A stretch of 64,000 bases of DNA from Sminthopsis crassicaudata (lineage: Eukaryota): assembly GCF_048593235.1 (NCBI RefSeq), contig NC_133617.1:267862937-267926936 (forward strand), read 5' to 3'. The notes under the pieces were generated by a model, which saw only the letters and a program-made list of their open reading frames with translations, did not search any database and was not told the origin of the DNA. The position numbers were made by a program, and so were the translations under genes. This document shows positions 29,121-35,711 of the stretch, piece by piece; the stretch's first letter is position 1, and each line of letters starts with the position of its first letter.

Positions 29121-29662
29121 TTTGATTAATCTTTGTGGTTTTTCAGATGATTTTATACCATCAAGGAAGGCATGAATGATGGAACAGTTAAAAAACTTGG
29201 GTTCTGGTCTTAGATTTGCCACTATCTATTTAGGCAAACTACTTAAGTTGGCTGGGTCTCAGTGTCCTCGTCTTTAAAATAATGAAGTTAGATAAGATGA
29301 TTTCTTAAGATTTTTTCATTTCTAACGTTCCTTGATTCTAACAGAAAAACTGGTGTATGTGTGTGTTTCATCTTATTCAGGTCATTCTGTATAATCTTTC
29401 AAGAACGTGCAACCAGACCATGGACACTGATATTAAGACAGGATTCCTAACCTAGAAACATTTTTAAAAATACATCTTTAATGTTCAGAAAAAATGATTT
29501 TAATTTAATTTAAAATTCTTTAGGAGTTAATGATAGTAATAGAAGAGTAAAGAGTAAAACATAAATTGGGATTACTTTGTAGAGTCATCTCAGTACTACA
29601 AATTGACAATAAGATTTGGGGTGTATATTCAAGGAAACATCACAAGGACAATATTCATTGAT

Positions 29663-30071
29663 TGTTAGGATTACTAAGTGAGAACTGAGGTTGTCTGGAT
29701 AGTGACAAGGTGAGAATTCAGGTTTTCTGGACAATTACAAGGTGAGAACTCAGGTTGACTTGATAGAGGGGGCAAGCTCATTGGCTGGGGTGGTTCTTCC
29801 CAGAAGCCCTTGCATTATCCCACGCCCATTCTCTGGGAGAATAAAAGAAGAGGACTCTCAGAGAAAGAGGAAGACTCTGAATTGCATCAGGCTTGACGGG
29901 GCTCTCTGCAGGAAGGGAAGTCACTTCTTTGGACAAGAGTTAACAGCAACTGCCTGGAGACAACGGTTCATTACAGGAAGAAGAATCTGTCGGAGAGATT
30001 TGAGTAGAAGACACAGCAGATCTCTTCCCAGAGAGCGATCCAGCAGCTTCTGGAGACGACAGCTCGCTACA
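29663..30071 (+). repeat. 5' LTR (409 bp)
   Basis: TGTTAGGATT...CTCGCTACA; no mismatch to the 3' LTR found by eye; 32-bp U3 repeats, ATTGG (reverse CCAAT), CACGCCC, AATAAA at 29840-29845. Confidence 0.97.
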
Positions 30072-30073
30072 TT

Positions 30074-30091
30074 TGGCGCCCAACGTGGGGC
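30074..30091 (+). promoter_or_regulatory. Primer-binding site 1, tRNA-Lys1,2 (CUU)
   Basis: TGGCGCCCAACGTGGGGC, 2 nt after the LTR-terminal CA; the known 18-nt Lys1,2 PBS of MPMV/HERV-K. Confidence 0.97.
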
Positions 30092-30143
30092 AAGGACTTT
30101 TACTTATCCTGACAAGAAGAGCTAGACTCAGACCTTTGCAATT

Positions 30144-30161
30144 TGGCGCCCGAACAGGGAC
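30144..30161 (+). promoter_or_regulatory. Primer-binding site 2, tRNA-Lys3 (UUU)
   Basis: TGGCGCCCGAACAGGGAC, the known 18-nt Lys3 PBS of HIV-1/MMTV; preceded by ...TTTGCA-ATT. Confidence 0.95.
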
Positions 30162-30226
30162 AGACACAGTCCTGATTCCAGTGGAAAAGCTTCCAATCTA
30201 GATCTCAGTCTCTCTGACCCAGAACC

Positions 30227-30233
30227 GTGAGTA
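30227..30233 (+). promoter_or_regulatory. Candidate retroviral major splice donor
   Basis: AACC|GTGAGTA between the PBS and the gag ATG, the usual position of the major donor. Confidence 0.6.
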
Positions 30234-30329
30234 ACGAGGAAACTTTGTTAAAGATTAAGTGAGCGTGCTAATAGATAAATAAGGAACTTAACTTGTTAAG
30301 GGCTAAACCAGGAATCTCTTATAGCTGAA

Positions 30330-32153
30330 ATGGGGCAGATGTTAGCTATATTCAATCCCTGGACCTCAGCCGACTCAACCTCAGCCCCAGACGCAACCTC
30401 AGCTCCATTCAGGAGTGGTACTATAGAGAGTATAATCAACATAATTGAGGAGCAGAGTTTACTTGTAACCTGGGTACAGATTGCTAAACTCTTGGCTGCA
30501 TTAAAACGCACATCCCCTTGGTTCTTAGAGGAAGAAAAGATAGATGTAGATAAATGGAAGCTAGTGGGATATGAAATGAAAGAATTTCAAGCAAAAAATG
30601 GGCCTCGTTCAATTTCTGCAGAAGTATTTTATATCTACAACATAGTTCAATTAGCCTTAAACTATCAAGCAAGTTGTAGGAGAAGGAAAAGTTCTAAAAA
30701 TGAACAGAGGAGGAAGTGTGAGGAAAAAAGGAAAGATCAAGATCTTTCCCTAGAGCAAGAGGATTTAAATGAGGAATTATGGTATGATTCTCTTGAAGAA
30801 GCTTCAACCCTGCCTAGAGAACAGATTATTGACAGGCCCACATCAACCCCACCTTCAGAGATGGAGGAAGAAAGAGGGGAAGAGGCAGAAACACAAACAG
30901 AATTGCCTGTGAAGCAGCCTAAGCCTATGACAAGATTAGAAAAAGCATTGGTTAAAGCTAAGAGAGAAGGACAGGATATAAGTGATTTTATACATGCATA
31001 TCCTGTGATTGAAAATACTGACTCTGTAGGTAAAAAAAGGAGAAGATATGCACCTTTAGATTTGAATAAAATTAAGGATTTGAAAAAAGGTTGTACCCTT
31101 TATGGGGCTACATCAGCTTATGTCAAAATGTTACTAGATGGTTTGTCTTATGAAGTCCTAACCCCGAATGATTGGAAATCCATAGCAAGGACATGTCTGG
31201 AACCTGGAGAAAATTTATTATGGCTTGCAGAATTTCATGAATTATGTAAAATTCAAGTCAGATGCAATTTGGAAATAGGAGTTAACACACAATTCACTTT
31301 TGAGCACTTAGCTGGTGAAGGTCAGTATGGGGAGAATTCGGAACAGATTAATTATACCATGACAATATATGAACAAATTGCTAAGGCTGCAATAAAAGCT
31401 TGGGGTGTCCTTCCTGGACAGAAAGATCGTGGAGAGGCTTTCACTAAAATACAGCAAGGTCCCAATGAACCTTTTGCAGATTTTGTGGGACGTTTGCAAA
31501 CTGCTGTTAAAAGAACTATTGGAGAAAATTCAGCTACAGAAATAATGACCAGACATCTGGCTAAGGAAAATGCCAATGAGATTTGCAAAAGAATTATATG
31601 GGGATTAGACAAAGATGCTCCTTTAGAGGAGATCATAAGACGCTGTGCTACAGTGGGAACAAATGCTTTTTACACCCGGACAATGATGAATGTGGAAAGA
31701 CAGGGTCCCTCCTGGCAAAGGCCTTCTAGAGAAACTCGGCGATGTTTTCAATGTGGAAAAATTGGGCATCTAAGAGCTCAGTGTAGGTATGGAGATACAG
31801 TGAGAAGACAGGGTGAAAGAAGACCTAAAACCCCATGTCCAAAATGCAACAGAGGATTCCATTGGGCATCAGAGTGTAGAATAATTCAGGGAAATGGGAT
31901 GAGGGGCCCAGGTCCAGGGCCCCAGGCAAAAAAGACTTGGGGCATGATGGCAGCTGATGTTACACCCAAAGAACCTTTAGAAGGCCAGGACTCTGATTTA
32001 ATCAATCAGCAGAGAAGCAATCACAAGGCAGAAAGGGATTACCTGATAAGTCAGTCAAAAGGCAATCAGATTGCAAAAATGGATTACACTTGGGGAGAAT
32101 ACAGGCCTTTTAAACCAACAGGGCTGTGCCCAGTGCAAACAACTCCAATGTAA
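30330..32153 (+). CDS. gag: Intact Gag polyprotein, 607 aa (MA-linker-CA-NC-tail), betaretrovirus-like
   Basis: Strong Kozak gaaATGG; MGQ myristoylation-type start; MHR IQQGPNEPFADFVGRLQ (31449-31499); CX2CX4HX4C knuckles at 31743-31784 and 31836-31877; no stops or frameshifts. Confidence 0.97.
   Translation: MGQMLAIFNPWTSADSTSAPDATSAPFRSGTIESIINIIEEQSLLVTWVQIAKLLAALKRTSPWFLEEEKIDVDKWKLVGYEMKEFQAKNGPRSISAEVFYIYNIVQLALNYQASCRRRKSSKNEQRRKCEEKRKDQDLSLEQEDLNEELWYDSLEEASTLPREQIIDRPTSTPPSEMEEERGEEAETQTELPVKQPKPMTRLEKALVKAKREGQDISDFIHAYPVIENTDSVGKKRRRYAPLDLNKIKDLKKGCTLYGATSAYVKMLLDGLSYEVLTPNDWKSIARTCLEPGENLLWLAEFHELCKIQVRCNLEIGVNTQFTFEHLAGEGQYGENSEQINYTMTIYEQIAKAAIKAWGVLPGQKDRGEAFTKIQQGPNEPFADFVGRLQTAVKRTIGENSATEIMTRHLAKENANEICKRIIWGLDKDAPLEEIIRRCATVGTNAFYTRTMMNVERQGPSWQRPSRETRRCFQCGKIGHLRAQCRYGDTVRRQGERRPKTPCPKCNRGFHWASECRIIQGNGMRGPGPGPQAKKTWGMMAADVTPKEPLEGQDSDLINQQRSNHKAERDYLISQSKGNQIAKMDYTWGEYRPFKPTGLCPVQTTPM
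31889..31923 (+). promoter_or_regulatory. gag-pro-type -1 ribosomal frameshift signal
   Basis: In-frame heptamer G GGA AAT (31889-31895), 7-nt spacer, then stem GGGGCCC (31903-31909), loop AGGTCCA, GGGCCCC (31917-31923). Same layout as the SRV-1/MPMV G GGA AAC site at the QGN motif. Confidence 0.75.
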
Positions 32154-32160
32154 TTGTCAG

Positions 32161-32350
32161 ATGATGAGAAGAGATTTAGAAAGTGGTAAATAGAAGGAAA
32201 TTAGATAGGTTAACTGCCTGGGAGAGAGGGTTTGCTTGTATTTCTTCAGCAGGAGAAGGAATCAGATGGGTGCCAACGAGTCATATTCGCCTTATCCACC
32301 AGAGAGAGACAGAAAAAGAGAAAGACCTCAAAATAAAGGAGAAGATCTAA
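32161..32350 (+). pseudogene. pol: Integrase C-terminal domain remnant (pol 3' end)
   Basis: MMRRDLESGK*KE, a +1 shift, then LDRLTAWERGFACISSAGEGIRWVPTSHIRL...*. Resembles the class II IN motif W..D....W..P..L..WGRGFAC....W.P.. Confidence 0.8.
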
Positions 32351-32643
32351 GAAACATCTGACACTGAAATAGCATGGATAATAAGAAGACTGTTAAAGAT
32401 CTTTAAAAACCAGCAGGAATCATTGGACTTTCTCACACAAGATGAGACTAATGGACAATGGACTTATGGACATTTATAAATTTTCAATTTATGATTATTT
32501 GATTATGTTATTTGTCATATACTTCTAGCATGTGTTACGCTACTATGTTACTATGTGCTTATGTAATTTATGTAATTATCTGTAATACTTCCCATATTGA
32601 TGGATTTAGGTTTCAAGGTCATGACTGTCCTATGTTCTAAATC

Positions 32644-32659
32644 AAAAGAAAGGGGGAGA
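32644..32659 (+). promoter_or_regulatory. Polypurine tract
   Basis: AAAAGAAAGGGGGAGA just upstream of the 3' LTR. Confidence 0.92.
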
Positions 32660-32664
32660 TTCGA

Positions 32665-33073
32665 TGTTAGGATTACTAAGTGAGAACTGAGGTTGTCTGG
32701 ATAGTGACAAGGTGAGAATTCAGGTTTTCTGGACAATTACAAGGTGAGAACTCAGGTTGACTTGATAGAGGGGGCAAGCTCATTGGCTGGGGTGGTTCTT
32801 CCCAGAAGCCCTTGCATTATCCCACGCCCATTCTCTGGGAGAATAAAAGAAGAGGACTCTCAGAGAAAGAGGAAGACTCTGAATTGCATCAGGCTTGACG
32901 GGGCTCTCTGCAGGAAGGGAAGTCACTTCTTTGGACAAGAGTTAACAGCAACTGCCTGGAGACAACGGTTCATTACAGGAAGAAGAATCTGTCGGAGAGA
33001 TTTGAGTAGAAGACACAGCAGATCTCTTCCCAGAGAGCGATCCAGCAGCTTCTGGAGACGACAGCTCGCTACA
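32665..33073 (+). repeat. 3' LTR (409 bp)
   Basis: Copy of the 5' LTR at offset +3002; followed by TSD ATTGAT. Confidence 0.97.
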
Positions 33074-35711
33074 ATTGATATAGAGGATAAAAGCTTGACA
33101 GTATGTTTTTAAACAGGCACTACTAGAGAAGGAGCTTGAACATCATATCAAGGAATCCAGGGGAGACTTACGTGGCCATGATGTTGCAAGTAAATCTGAA
33201 GTTTTATTTAGTTGTGCTTCTGTCGGCCTACAAGAGTTAGAGTGACAAATACACTAGGAATCATCACTACCTAGTGTAATGTATGTATTGCACTACTTAG
33301 TAGTGCAATGTAAGCATAGTGAAAACTTCACAAACATTTTATGAACAAAAAGAGTAACCTGAACCAGGTTTATCCATAAAATTTCATATTCCCAAATAAA
33401 AACAGCAAGAAGTGCCATGATGGGTCTTAAGAATTCAACATCAATTTGTTGATGTTGAAGGCAACAGAGAAACAGAAGTAATACTTAGACAATAGCACCC
33501 AAACATAGAGCCTAAATATTGGTTGCTGAGAAAGGGCACTGACTATATTAACATGGATTGGCTCAGTTTGAATAAGATGCTTTTTCTAGACTATGAAGAA
33601 GACAAGGCAGAGCTTTAAATAGTTCTACTAATCCATATAGAGACTTCAAATCATTCCTGTAGTGTTGGGGTTTTTTCCATTCATATTATCATCAGGTAAT
33701 CAAATAAGTGTAGAATTATTGTAGTGTATTTTATGCATTCTAAAGGAGGAAGTAGGAAATTCATATGACAAAATGGTAAAGAAAGCTTCATTACCAGAAA
33801 GAGGTCAGATTTTTTTTTTTCCTTTTTTGATGGAATTTCCATATGATGTGAATATATTACTTTTAGACTATACAAACTATAGGTATATTTTAGACATTTT
33901 GTTAATCTCATTCTTTTTATGTCTAATCCTAATCTTGAACTCATGCATGACTCTTTCCCTCCCTCTAATTATCTATTATGATGAAGTAATACAGCTTTAA
34001 TCATCAACTCTGATTCAGCTTTCCTGTTGTTTTTTTATTTTTCCTGTAGTTGGTTATTATTTGGACTTAAAATATAAAAGTCACCAACTGACTGGGAATT
34101 TTATGCTGGTTTATAGGAAGTAAATGAGACTAGACACATTTTTATAAGTATCTGTCTCTATTTCATTGCAACACTCCAGGCACTGCCTTCAAACTGGAAC
34201 TGAAAGCTGTCTACATATGTGCCTATTTGCAGTTCTATTTAGTGGCTGTATCATACCTGACTTTTGAGTATAGTGTTACTTCTGTTTTCCAAGAGTATAT
34301 GTCTCAGTGACAGAGTTTCTTTGTCAGAAACTTTATCACCAGAAATAGTAGTGTCCTAGGAGCCATAGGGATGTATTCTAGGATCTCAGATCCTTACCTG
34401 AAGCCCAAACATAGCTTTAAAAAAGCCCGTAAGTGGTTACTGAACTAGCATTGTATGTATCTGGAAATGTAAAATGTGGGTGTGAGGGGAGGATAAGTTT
34501 TGAATTGAGGTTAAAAATGGCAGAAGAGAGGACTCATTCACTTCTGCTCAGGTACAGTTGAGGTTGAGTCTGAAGAAGGGAACCTTTCAGCAGCCAGAAC
34601 CATGCCTAAAGAAAGGCTTGTATAAGTTTTGGGGGGAAAAAAAAAAAAACAGGAGTCAAAGGGAACATAGTCCATCTTCTTTCACCAATTTTCTCTCTAA
34701 AGTCCACTCCGAGAAGTAAGTTTTAGCAACTTCCAGAGGCTGTTTTATCTTCATAGGAAAAGAAGGGGCTTTTTGTGATCATCACTGTGCTCTTGCCTCA
34801 TTCTTTAAAATGGCAGAGGAAGGGGAAGGAAAAGTCATAAAATGAACAAAGCTTACATTTCAGATTAATTTAATAGACTTAGGATGTTAAGATTCCTTCT
34901 GAGCTTCCCACCTGTTCCTCATACATAAAACTTCTTTAAGGAAAAGAACCCTTCAATACACAATTCAAAATGCAGGCAAATGCCTGGATGAGGTAATACT
35001 TTAGTGTAAATGAATTTCCGTTCAAATATAATCAGTCATTCCATCAATAAGTATGAGTGATTGGTTATCAGATCTTTCCCTGTTTTAATAGGGGGGGATG
35101 GGGTGAAGAGAAGAGGAGGCTGGGGGCAGAAGACAAAATTTCAGGCTTCCCAACTTTGCCTAGGGTAAGCCCTACTTGCCTTCAACTGGGCTGGGTCAAA
35201 TAGGAGGTGGTGCACTAAGTCATTTTTGTCCAAGAGGGATAAACCCAGACAATTCTGCTTTATGGAGTTTTTGATTTTTTTTTTTTCCCCTAAAGTAAAA
35301 CTGAATTTATATAAATGGGTGTCTTTCTCAGGGAGATATCATTATACATGTATTTTTCACTTCCCAAGGCAATGTCATATTCCAAAAATATAACTACAGA
35401 AGAATTTGGACCCTGTAAAAGAGGGCCTCATTTCCACTTCTCTCTTCCATGTGTCCGAGAAGAGGAAATTAATCCTATTTATCAAGCTTTGGCCATGAGT
35501 GATGACTTTTCATCTTAGTTTTTCTTGTATTTGTTGTTATTTCTTGAACATTAAACAATGCTATTTTTGGAGTAGTGAGGGAGGTGGGGTCTAAGTTCTA
35601 TAACTATTAACAGATTATTTAGCTTGTTTGATTCAAGAGGTAAAGGACAAGGGTAAGTTGATGAATAGGGATTCTGTTTGTTTTTCAAGGATTATTATTT
35701 TATTCTTTTAG

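Follow-up and report, generated by a model that had tools for sequence, protein, structure and literature searches.

A young gag-only subfamily of endogenous retroviruses in the fat-tailed dunnart that probably pairs its own Gag with Pro-Pol supplied in trans

The genome of the fat-tailed dunnart, Sminthopsis crassicaudata, contains a recently inserted endogenous retrovirus (ERV) that has kept a complete gag gene and has lost everything enzymatic. The element lies at positions 29663-33073 of the stretch analyzed here, which is 64,000 nucleotides long (NCBI RefSeq assembly GCF_048593235.1, contig NC_133617.1, positions 267,862,937 to 267,926,936, forward strand) and is referred to as the window. 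We conclude that the element, itself very recently inserted, belongs to a non-autonomous, gag-only subfamily with multiple copies, the members of which would probably provide their own Gag and obtain Pro-Pol in trans. The same internal deletion is found at other loci, where copies were inserted independently and recently; a close, coding-competent relative is present in the same genome; and the capsid and nucleocapsid portions of Gag are under purifying selection. Coordinates given without a locus name are those of the window, and all features of the element are on the forward (+) strand.

The element is 3,411 bp long as read from the sequence, and is flanked by two copies of a 6-bp target-site duplication (TSD), ATTGAT (29657-29662 and 33074-33079). 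Its two long terminal repeats (LTRs) of 409 bp each (29663-30071 and 32665-33073) begin with TG, end with CA and are 100% identical in pairwise comparison (0/409 mismatches). The U3 region of the 5' LTR carries 2.8 copies of a 32-bp tandem repeat (29678-29766). The leader, which extends from the 5' LTR to the gag ATG (30072-30329) and is 97-99% identical among young copies, contains two primer-binding sites (PBSs) of 18 nt, of which PBS 1 (30074-30091) starts 2 nt past the 5' LTR and PBS 2 (30144-30161) lies 70 nt downstream of PBS 1. The hexamer GTGAGT at 30227-30232 in the leader, upstream of gag, reads as a consensus-like 5' splice donor. The sole long open reading frame (ORF) of the element on either strand is gag (30330-32153), which starts with ATG and encodes 607 amino acids beginning with MGQ, with no internal stop in the translation.

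The 511 bp between the gag stop and the 3' LTR (32154-32664) hold short ORFs only and are colinear with the sequence upstream of the 3' LTR in the full-length relative L004 described below. In order, this region comprises what is left of the 3' end of pol, untranslated AT-rich sequence containing short repeats, and a 16-nt polypurine tract (PPT; 32644-32659) that ends 5 nt short of the 3' LTR. The pol remnant is a 55-codon ORF (32183-32350), out of frame with gag, that shows 96% identity with the final 48 residues of the L004 Pol and has a weak match to the Pfam profile IN_DBD_C, the C-terminal DNA-binding domain of integrase (IN), at 19.2 bits, under the cut-off of 21. The survey of Pfam domains and ORFs revealed no protease, reverse transcriptase (RT), RNase H, IN zinc or core domain and no env in the element. 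A preliminary description of this DNA, made from its letters, had placed a provirus with LTRs, PBS, leader and PPT at exactly these coordinates and had given it an open Gag of 607 amino acids and about 510 bp between gag and the 3' LTR; our measurements agree with each of these statements.

By its matrix, capsid and two CCHC zinc knuckles, the encoded protein can be assigned to the betaretrovirus-type Gags (class II, ERV-K-type). The matrix (MA) domain corresponds to Pfam Gag_p10 (residues 35-110, 30432-30659, E 2.6e-10), and the capsid (CA) to the Gag_p24 N-terminal domain (residues 240-364, E 8e-35) followed by Gag_p24_C (residues 369-437, E 7e-20; together 31047-31640). All three profiles are covered near full length. 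The nucleocapsid (NC) region contains the two knuckles (residues 471-485 and 503-517, 31740-31880), each of which alone scores under the Pfam cut-off, with the CCHC spacing readable in the translation. Among sequences in PDB, betaretroviral (M-PMV/JSRV-type) and HERV-K capsids are the best relatives of solved structure. The alignment to the separate 608-aa Gag of a more distant relative, L007, reaches within one residue of the C-terminus of that protein, and therefore the ORF in the window spans all of Gag and then continues for about 20 codons of non-Gag sequence up to a new stop.

Just past the second knuckle, inside the gag ORF though pro is gone, there is a stretch resembling a gag/pro -1 ribosomal frameshift signal (31889-31944), with a slippery heptamer in the correct register and a GC-rich stem. 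It matches Rfam RF01097 below threshold (33.9 bits against a gathering score of 43, E 1.4e-4 on a short stretch) and was the sole match in the Rfam scan; known packaging or export elements were absent from its results. Reading in the -1 frame meets a stop after about 20 codons, and if the signal is active, a shorter Gag isoform would result.

A protein search identified a paralogue of the window Gag in S. crassicaudata itself (607 aa, 98% identical), together with 11 further dunnart Gag-like proteins in three 90% clusters; no entry in the collection was identical to the window Gag. The DNA around 12 dunnart Gag proteins was obtained from the chromosome-level assembly GCA_048593235.1 (loci L001-L012). 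Since the copies were located via annotated Gag proteins, this sample is small, biased to open ORFs and no census. From one LTR to the other, ten of the loci (L001, L002, L003, L005, L006, L008-L012) align colinearly with the window element, and the pro-pol stretch present in the full-length relative is missing from all of them in an identical way. A 120-nt probe over the end of the window ORF matched all ten at 91-100%, ungapped at nine and with one gap at L009, and had no comparable match in the full-length L004 or L007. In domain terms, all that lay between the end of gag and the C-terminal domain of integrase was lost in the deletion. The gag-only copies are located on four chromosome-scale records, with distinct flanks and distinct 6-bp TSDs; duplications of this length were identified at L001, L002, L003, L004, L005 and L006 as well as in the window. 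A junction common to ten other loci with independent TSDs lies far beyond chance and indicates that the deletion arose once and was amplified as a unit, an outcome that the preliminary description had envisaged. A protein search specific to the tail found the gag-only form in S. crassicaudata proteins only.

Three of the gag-only copies (L006, L009 and L011) form a B-type sublineage, in which CA, NC and the deletion are as in the A-type copies and the MA region is divergent. This MA has about 30% amino-acid identity, a weak Gag_p10 match and no N-terminal glycine (L006 10001-10450, L011 10001-10450, L009 9527-9950); its nearest match, at 50%, is a fragment of another ERV at L002 21053-21491.

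Most of the insertions are recent. The LTR pairs differ at 0/409 positions in the window element, 0/434 in L001, 0/464 in L002, 1/401 in L003, 0/408 in L005, 2/468 in L011 and 3/459 in L006; L008 is older (10/458), the LTRs of L009 differ by about 5%, and L010 is older still. Between copies, LTRs diverge by 2-9% at aligned positions and range in length from 401 to 468 bp. Set against the near-identical LTR pairs, this divergence implies that the subfamily diversified over many replication cycles, while the individual insertions are very recent. At a generic mammalian rate, the 0/409 mismatches put the probable age of the window copy below one to two million years; the insertion may be polymorphic. 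The variation in LTR length is not due to the number of 32-bp repeats in U3, since all copies have 2.0-2.8 of them.

The closest full-length relative, L004, is an env-less element of 6,386 bp with its own TSD, one mismatch between its LTRs, and LTRs about 95% identical to those of the window element. Its Gag and a retroviral protease are encoded in a single 785-aa ORF (L004 10001-12358), and its Pol in an overlapping 889-aa ORF (L004 12301-14970) with RT, thumb, RNase H and all three IN domains. With its open gag-pro and pol, L004 is a candidate for the full-length helper that the preliminary description had in mind. The long form may make no free Gag, judging from L004, the one such locus examined. 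The second full-length element, L007, is more distant (about 70% nucleotide identity, 56% in Gag), also env-less, with a separate 608-aa Gag and 2 LTR mismatches; a 56-bp tandem repeat array lies between its pol and 3' LTR (L007 15145-15485). Among loci with a Gag at least 74% identical, gag-only copies outnumber the full-length form 11:1 in this protein-derived sample, with the window included.

The best matches of the L004 Pol outside dasyurids are SRV-1, IAP and other betaretrovirus-type Pol proteins (40-46% identity), and a Pol fragment from the Tasmanian devil is 93% identical, placing L004 in a lineage common to dasyurids. The same protein search returned no dunnart Pol proteins, only the devil fragment and distant betaretroviruses. 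Harding et al. (2024) described MEBrv 3, an env-less betaretrovirus-like clade that accounts for most of the dasyurid ERVs. The elements they describe measure about 7.3 kb, and in the fat-tailed dunnart the clade keeps gag, pro and pol intact and has LTR pairs without differences (PMC11334065). L004 (6.4 kb, 1 LTR mismatch) and L007 (2 LTR mismatches) match this description and come from the same host species; L004 differs in length from the published elements, and the window element differs as a deleted derivative. The parent clade of the window element is therefore most likely MEBrv 3, as judged from the published description. No mention of a gag-only or non-autonomous form is made in the MEBrv 3 paper (PMC11334065).

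Further ERV sequences were observed in the flanks of the fetched loci, namely a solo LTR at L006 600-1181 that belongs to the same family (about 82% identity) and a gag fragment of a different ERV at L002 21053-21824. They hint that class II ERVs are densely distributed in the dunnart genome. Some NCBI gene models at L004, L007 and L008 span many kb and translate non-colinearly, suggesting spliced chimeric models.

The gag genes of the young A-type copies remain largely open, with ORFs of 607, 607, 607 and 609 aa and one late stop in L005 (576 aa). Older copies are broken in gag, L008 by one frameshift and L010 by one frameshift and one stop; the B-type copies and L004 were left out of this tally because global alignment gave spurious indels at the replaced MA and at the junction. 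Pairwise Nei-Gojobori ratios of non-synonymous to synonymous divergence (dN/dS) among the five young copies range from 0.19 to 0.49 and pool to 0.29, and the B-type pair L006 and L011 gives 0.34. The ratio across copies, which the preliminary description had named as informative, is thus about 0.3 and not 1. When each variable codon was counted once over residues 1-575, where the neutral expectation is 79% non-synonymous, we found 26 synonymous and 28 non-synonymous variable codons (P 7.6e-6 for an excess of synonymous change). Purifying selection is strongest in CA (11 synonymous, 4 non-synonymous, P 2e-5) and is also evident in NC plus tail (14 and 12, P 2.5e-4), whereas no constraint was seen in MA plus linker (1 and 12). 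The excess of synonymous change holds for transition/transversion ratios (kappa) of 1-8. CA and NC are under protein-level purifying selection within the gag-only lineage.

Synonymous divergence between the young copies is about 3%, far more than the 0 to 0.7% between paired LTRs, so that most of the differences arose on replicating lineages. Consequently, the selection acted on propagation of the element and not on a host function at a fixed locus. A separate feature of the five young copies is that the first 235 gag codons (30330-31034) contain a single synonymous variable codon, against 25 in CA-NC (31035-32054); the scarcity of synonymous variation in 5' gag could reflect either an RNA-level constraint, such as an extended packaging signal, or recent homogenisation.

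These observations can be combined into a history and a proposed mechanism. A single ancestral internal deletion eliminated protease, RT, RNase H and most of integrase, but spared the LTRs, both PBSs, the leader, gag in full, the end of pol, the 3' untranslated region and the PPT. As a unit, the deleted genome has since been copied many times. Transcription from the LTR would yield an RNA of about 3 kb that serves both as genome and as Gag mRNA, and the translated Gag, above all its CA and NC portions, would co-assemble with the Gag-Pro and Gag-Pro-Pol of full-length relatives such as L004. Gag would preferentially package the RNA from which it was translated, while protease, reverse transcriptase and integrase would act in trans. 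Priming by tRNA-Lys could take place at either PBS, and integration would generate the 6-bp duplication.

A different account of the conserved gag, which we regard as possible though unlikely, is that it is a by-product of co-packaging and template switching, through which gag is refreshed from autonomous elements, so that the deleted form has no need of its own Gag and, like ETn or the bovine D-type, wins through its shortness, abundance or better packaging. Segment-wise comparison, with the two sides of the deleted region in L004 taken separately, places L004 inside the diversity of the gag-only copies for the LTR, leader, MA, linker and CA, and its distance from them in these segments is no greater than the distances among those copies (in CA, 0.85% between L004 and gag-only copies and 1.11% among the latter). 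The picture changes sharply at NC, where L004 differs from gag-only copies by 13% and these differ among themselves by 3.3%; between the window element and L004, synonymous divergence (dS) is 0.03 in CA and jumps to 0.34 in the zinc-knuckle region, where dN/dS is 0.12. The family is thus a recombination mosaic in which gag-only and long forms exchange sequence. The foreign MA of the B-type copies is likewise a replacement by recombination between ERV lineages, and pervasive recombination of competent and defective ERVs is known from cattle (PMC10924933). However, the NC segment is specific to the gag-only form with respect to the sole full-length copy seen, and yet synonymous changes are in excess there within the clade of gag-only copies (8 synonymous to 4 non-synonymous variable codons in the zinc-knuckle region itself, and the significant 14:12 once the tail is added). 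Moreover, the deletion spares the whole of gag and nothing of pro, which would be unexpected were gag dispensable, and ETn-like derivatives that need no gag usually lose it.

The proposal that the subfamily lives on its own Gag and borrowed Pro-Pol is weakened by several considerations. Recombination with full-length elements is frequent and could import a selected gag without any role in cis; it is mainly because the selected gag might have been imported from autonomous elements that we do not place more confidence in the mechanism. A single close full-length copy was seen, and the dS of 0.34 in its NC segment relative to the gag-only type means that L004 is not the direct parent. Membership in MEBrv 3 is likely on the basis of its published description. 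The sample of copies is biased towards open ORFs and small, with 5 young A-type copies and 54 classifiable variable codons. Finally, MA and linker are free of constraint, at 1 synonymous against 12 non-synonymous codons.

The structure of L004 allows another arrangement to be considered, namely a division of labour in which a pol-bearing partner with gag fused to pro makes no free Gag, the gag-only form supplies Gag and the long form supplies Pro-Pol, each relying on the other. The single 785-aa gag-pro ORF of L004, compared with the separately ending Gag of both the window element and L007, and the 11:1 ratio among close loci would fit this arrangement. We nevertheless find it improbable, since it rests on one close full-length copy, other full-length copies may have a separate gag, and a Gag-Pro fusion need not be defective. 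In alpharetroviruses the protease is encoded in the gag frame. Taken to its end, the arrangement would become a split-genome retroelement in which free Gag comes only from the abundant gag-only copies, each form needs the other in the way that multipartite virus segments do, and the dual PBS serves as an adaptive primer switch; we mention this as a speculation with only a slim chance of being correct.

Equally improbable is that the gag-only product interferes, its co-assembly lowering the activity of the helper either as a side effect of a parasite of a parasite or as a host restriction factor like enJS56A1 or Fv1. A protease-less Gag mixing with helper Gag-Pro would be expected to alter particle stoichiometry, MA variation is mostly non-synonymous (9:1), and bovine D-type elements have been proposed as parasite-of-parasite drives (PMC10924933). 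Like the dunnart element, Fv1 and sheep enJS56A1 keep an ERV gag ORF open without a matching functional pol, but they are single loci maintained by the host, whereas the dunnart family is young, multi-copy and transposing. A host gene should appear as one fixed intact locus, and we observed at least 11 loci with different target sites and mostly identical LTRs, older copies decaying through stops and frameshifts, and a gag-only form confined to the dunnart in the tail-specific protein search. Interference as a side effect may occur but would not explain why an open CA-NC is kept along replicating lineages. We therefore reject a domesticated restriction gene of the Fv1/enJS56A1 kind as the principal explanation, and of the two functions offered in the preliminary description, a semi-autonomous parasite and a restriction of the Fv1/enJSRV type, the former is favoured and the latter disfavoured by the many young copies and the decay of the older ones. 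A one-off deletion, or the collapse of a full-length provirus in the assembly, can be dismissed as practically impossible, having no point in its support and being contradicted by the same junction at ten other loci with their own flanks and TSDs on four chromosome-scale records, which together with the window make 11.

The two primer-binding sites deserve separate description. PBS 1 is an exact 18-nt match to the PBS-Lys1,2 string, and PBS 2 to the PBS-Lys3 string, as printed in two papers (PMC8775094, PMC1084362). ARAGORN found no tRNA genes in the window and the 11 loci, and the identity of the sites rests on these published strings. Both sites are present in most close copies, including the full-length L004, while L007 has the first type only. 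The geometry of the LTR and TSD shows that the window copy was primed from PBS 1. In L003, the 3' LTR runs on through PBS 1 and the spacer to the dinucleotide CA immediately before the position of PBS 2, and the TSD TCTAGC flanks this extended 3' end (L003 9746-9832 and 12834-12905). Such a structure is the footprint expected of priming from PBS 2, and it indicates that the second site was used in nature. A limited literature search returned no precedent for a natural dual PBS.

As would be expected of a non-autonomous derivative, the gag-only form lacks RT and IN, has its LTRs, PBS and PPT in common with a coding-competent partner, and occurs at 11 loci with their own TSDs. The preliminary description had held that most non-autonomous ERVs lose gag; this needs correction insofar as gag retention has a precedent in mouse IAP I-delta-1 (PMC6466679). 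Both systems consist of an env-less, betaretrovirus-like intracellular ERV and an internally deleted form encoding a Gag-containing ORF. In I-delta-1 the product of its own ORF acts in cis, Gag and Pol are needed in trans from full-length elements, and this form makes most new insertions (PMC6466679); the corresponding dependence in the dunnart would be of the same kind. I-delta-1 has lost part of gag and encodes a gag-pol fusion, whereas the dunnart element, known from sequence, keeps the entire gag with a short non-Gag tail.

The pairs ETn/MusD in mouse and D-type/C-type of bovine ERVK[2-1-LTR] are similar in that the derivative has the LTRs, PBS and flanking internal sequence of its partner and outnumbers it (PMC10924933, PMC6466679). 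In cattle, 85% of the ERVK[2-1-LTR] copies belong to the D-type, with recombination between the forms (PMC10924933). However, functional genes are absent from ETn and the D-type, in which unrelated sequence takes the place of the central segment, while the dunnart element is a clean deletion with an intact, selected gag. The same layout is found in plant TR-GAG elements, which are under 4 kb and comprise LTRs, PBS, PPT and a single Gag-only ORF (PMC4350172); these are Ty1/Ty3-type retrotransposons of unrelated sequence, and the resemblance is convergent.

Elsewhere in the window, an ordinary repeat is present as a 291-codon ORF on the reverse strand (53022-53897), which corresponds to the C-terminal portion of LINE-1 ORF2 protein and matches the solved human ORF2p with an E of 5e-89. 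Runs of N occupy 8471-8611 and 11771-12142.

Non-autonomous ERVs that outcompete their helpers are already known, as in ETn, IAP I-delta-1 and the bovine D-type. The dunnart subfamily offers a natural example of the retention of precisely gag and no enzymatic part. Its insertions are recent enough for their LTRs to be identical, and its copies have diverged far enough to reveal purifying selection on CA-NC and none on MA; it bears on the questions of why some non-autonomous ERVs keep coding capacity and whether Gag favours its own RNA. In addition, tandem PBSs together with a copy that records the use of the second offer a rare natural view of primer choice. With the dunnart emerging as a laboratory marsupial and the MEBrv 3 clade prevailing in dasyurid genomes, genome, population and expression data alone can address whether Gag acts in cis or is refreshed by recombination.

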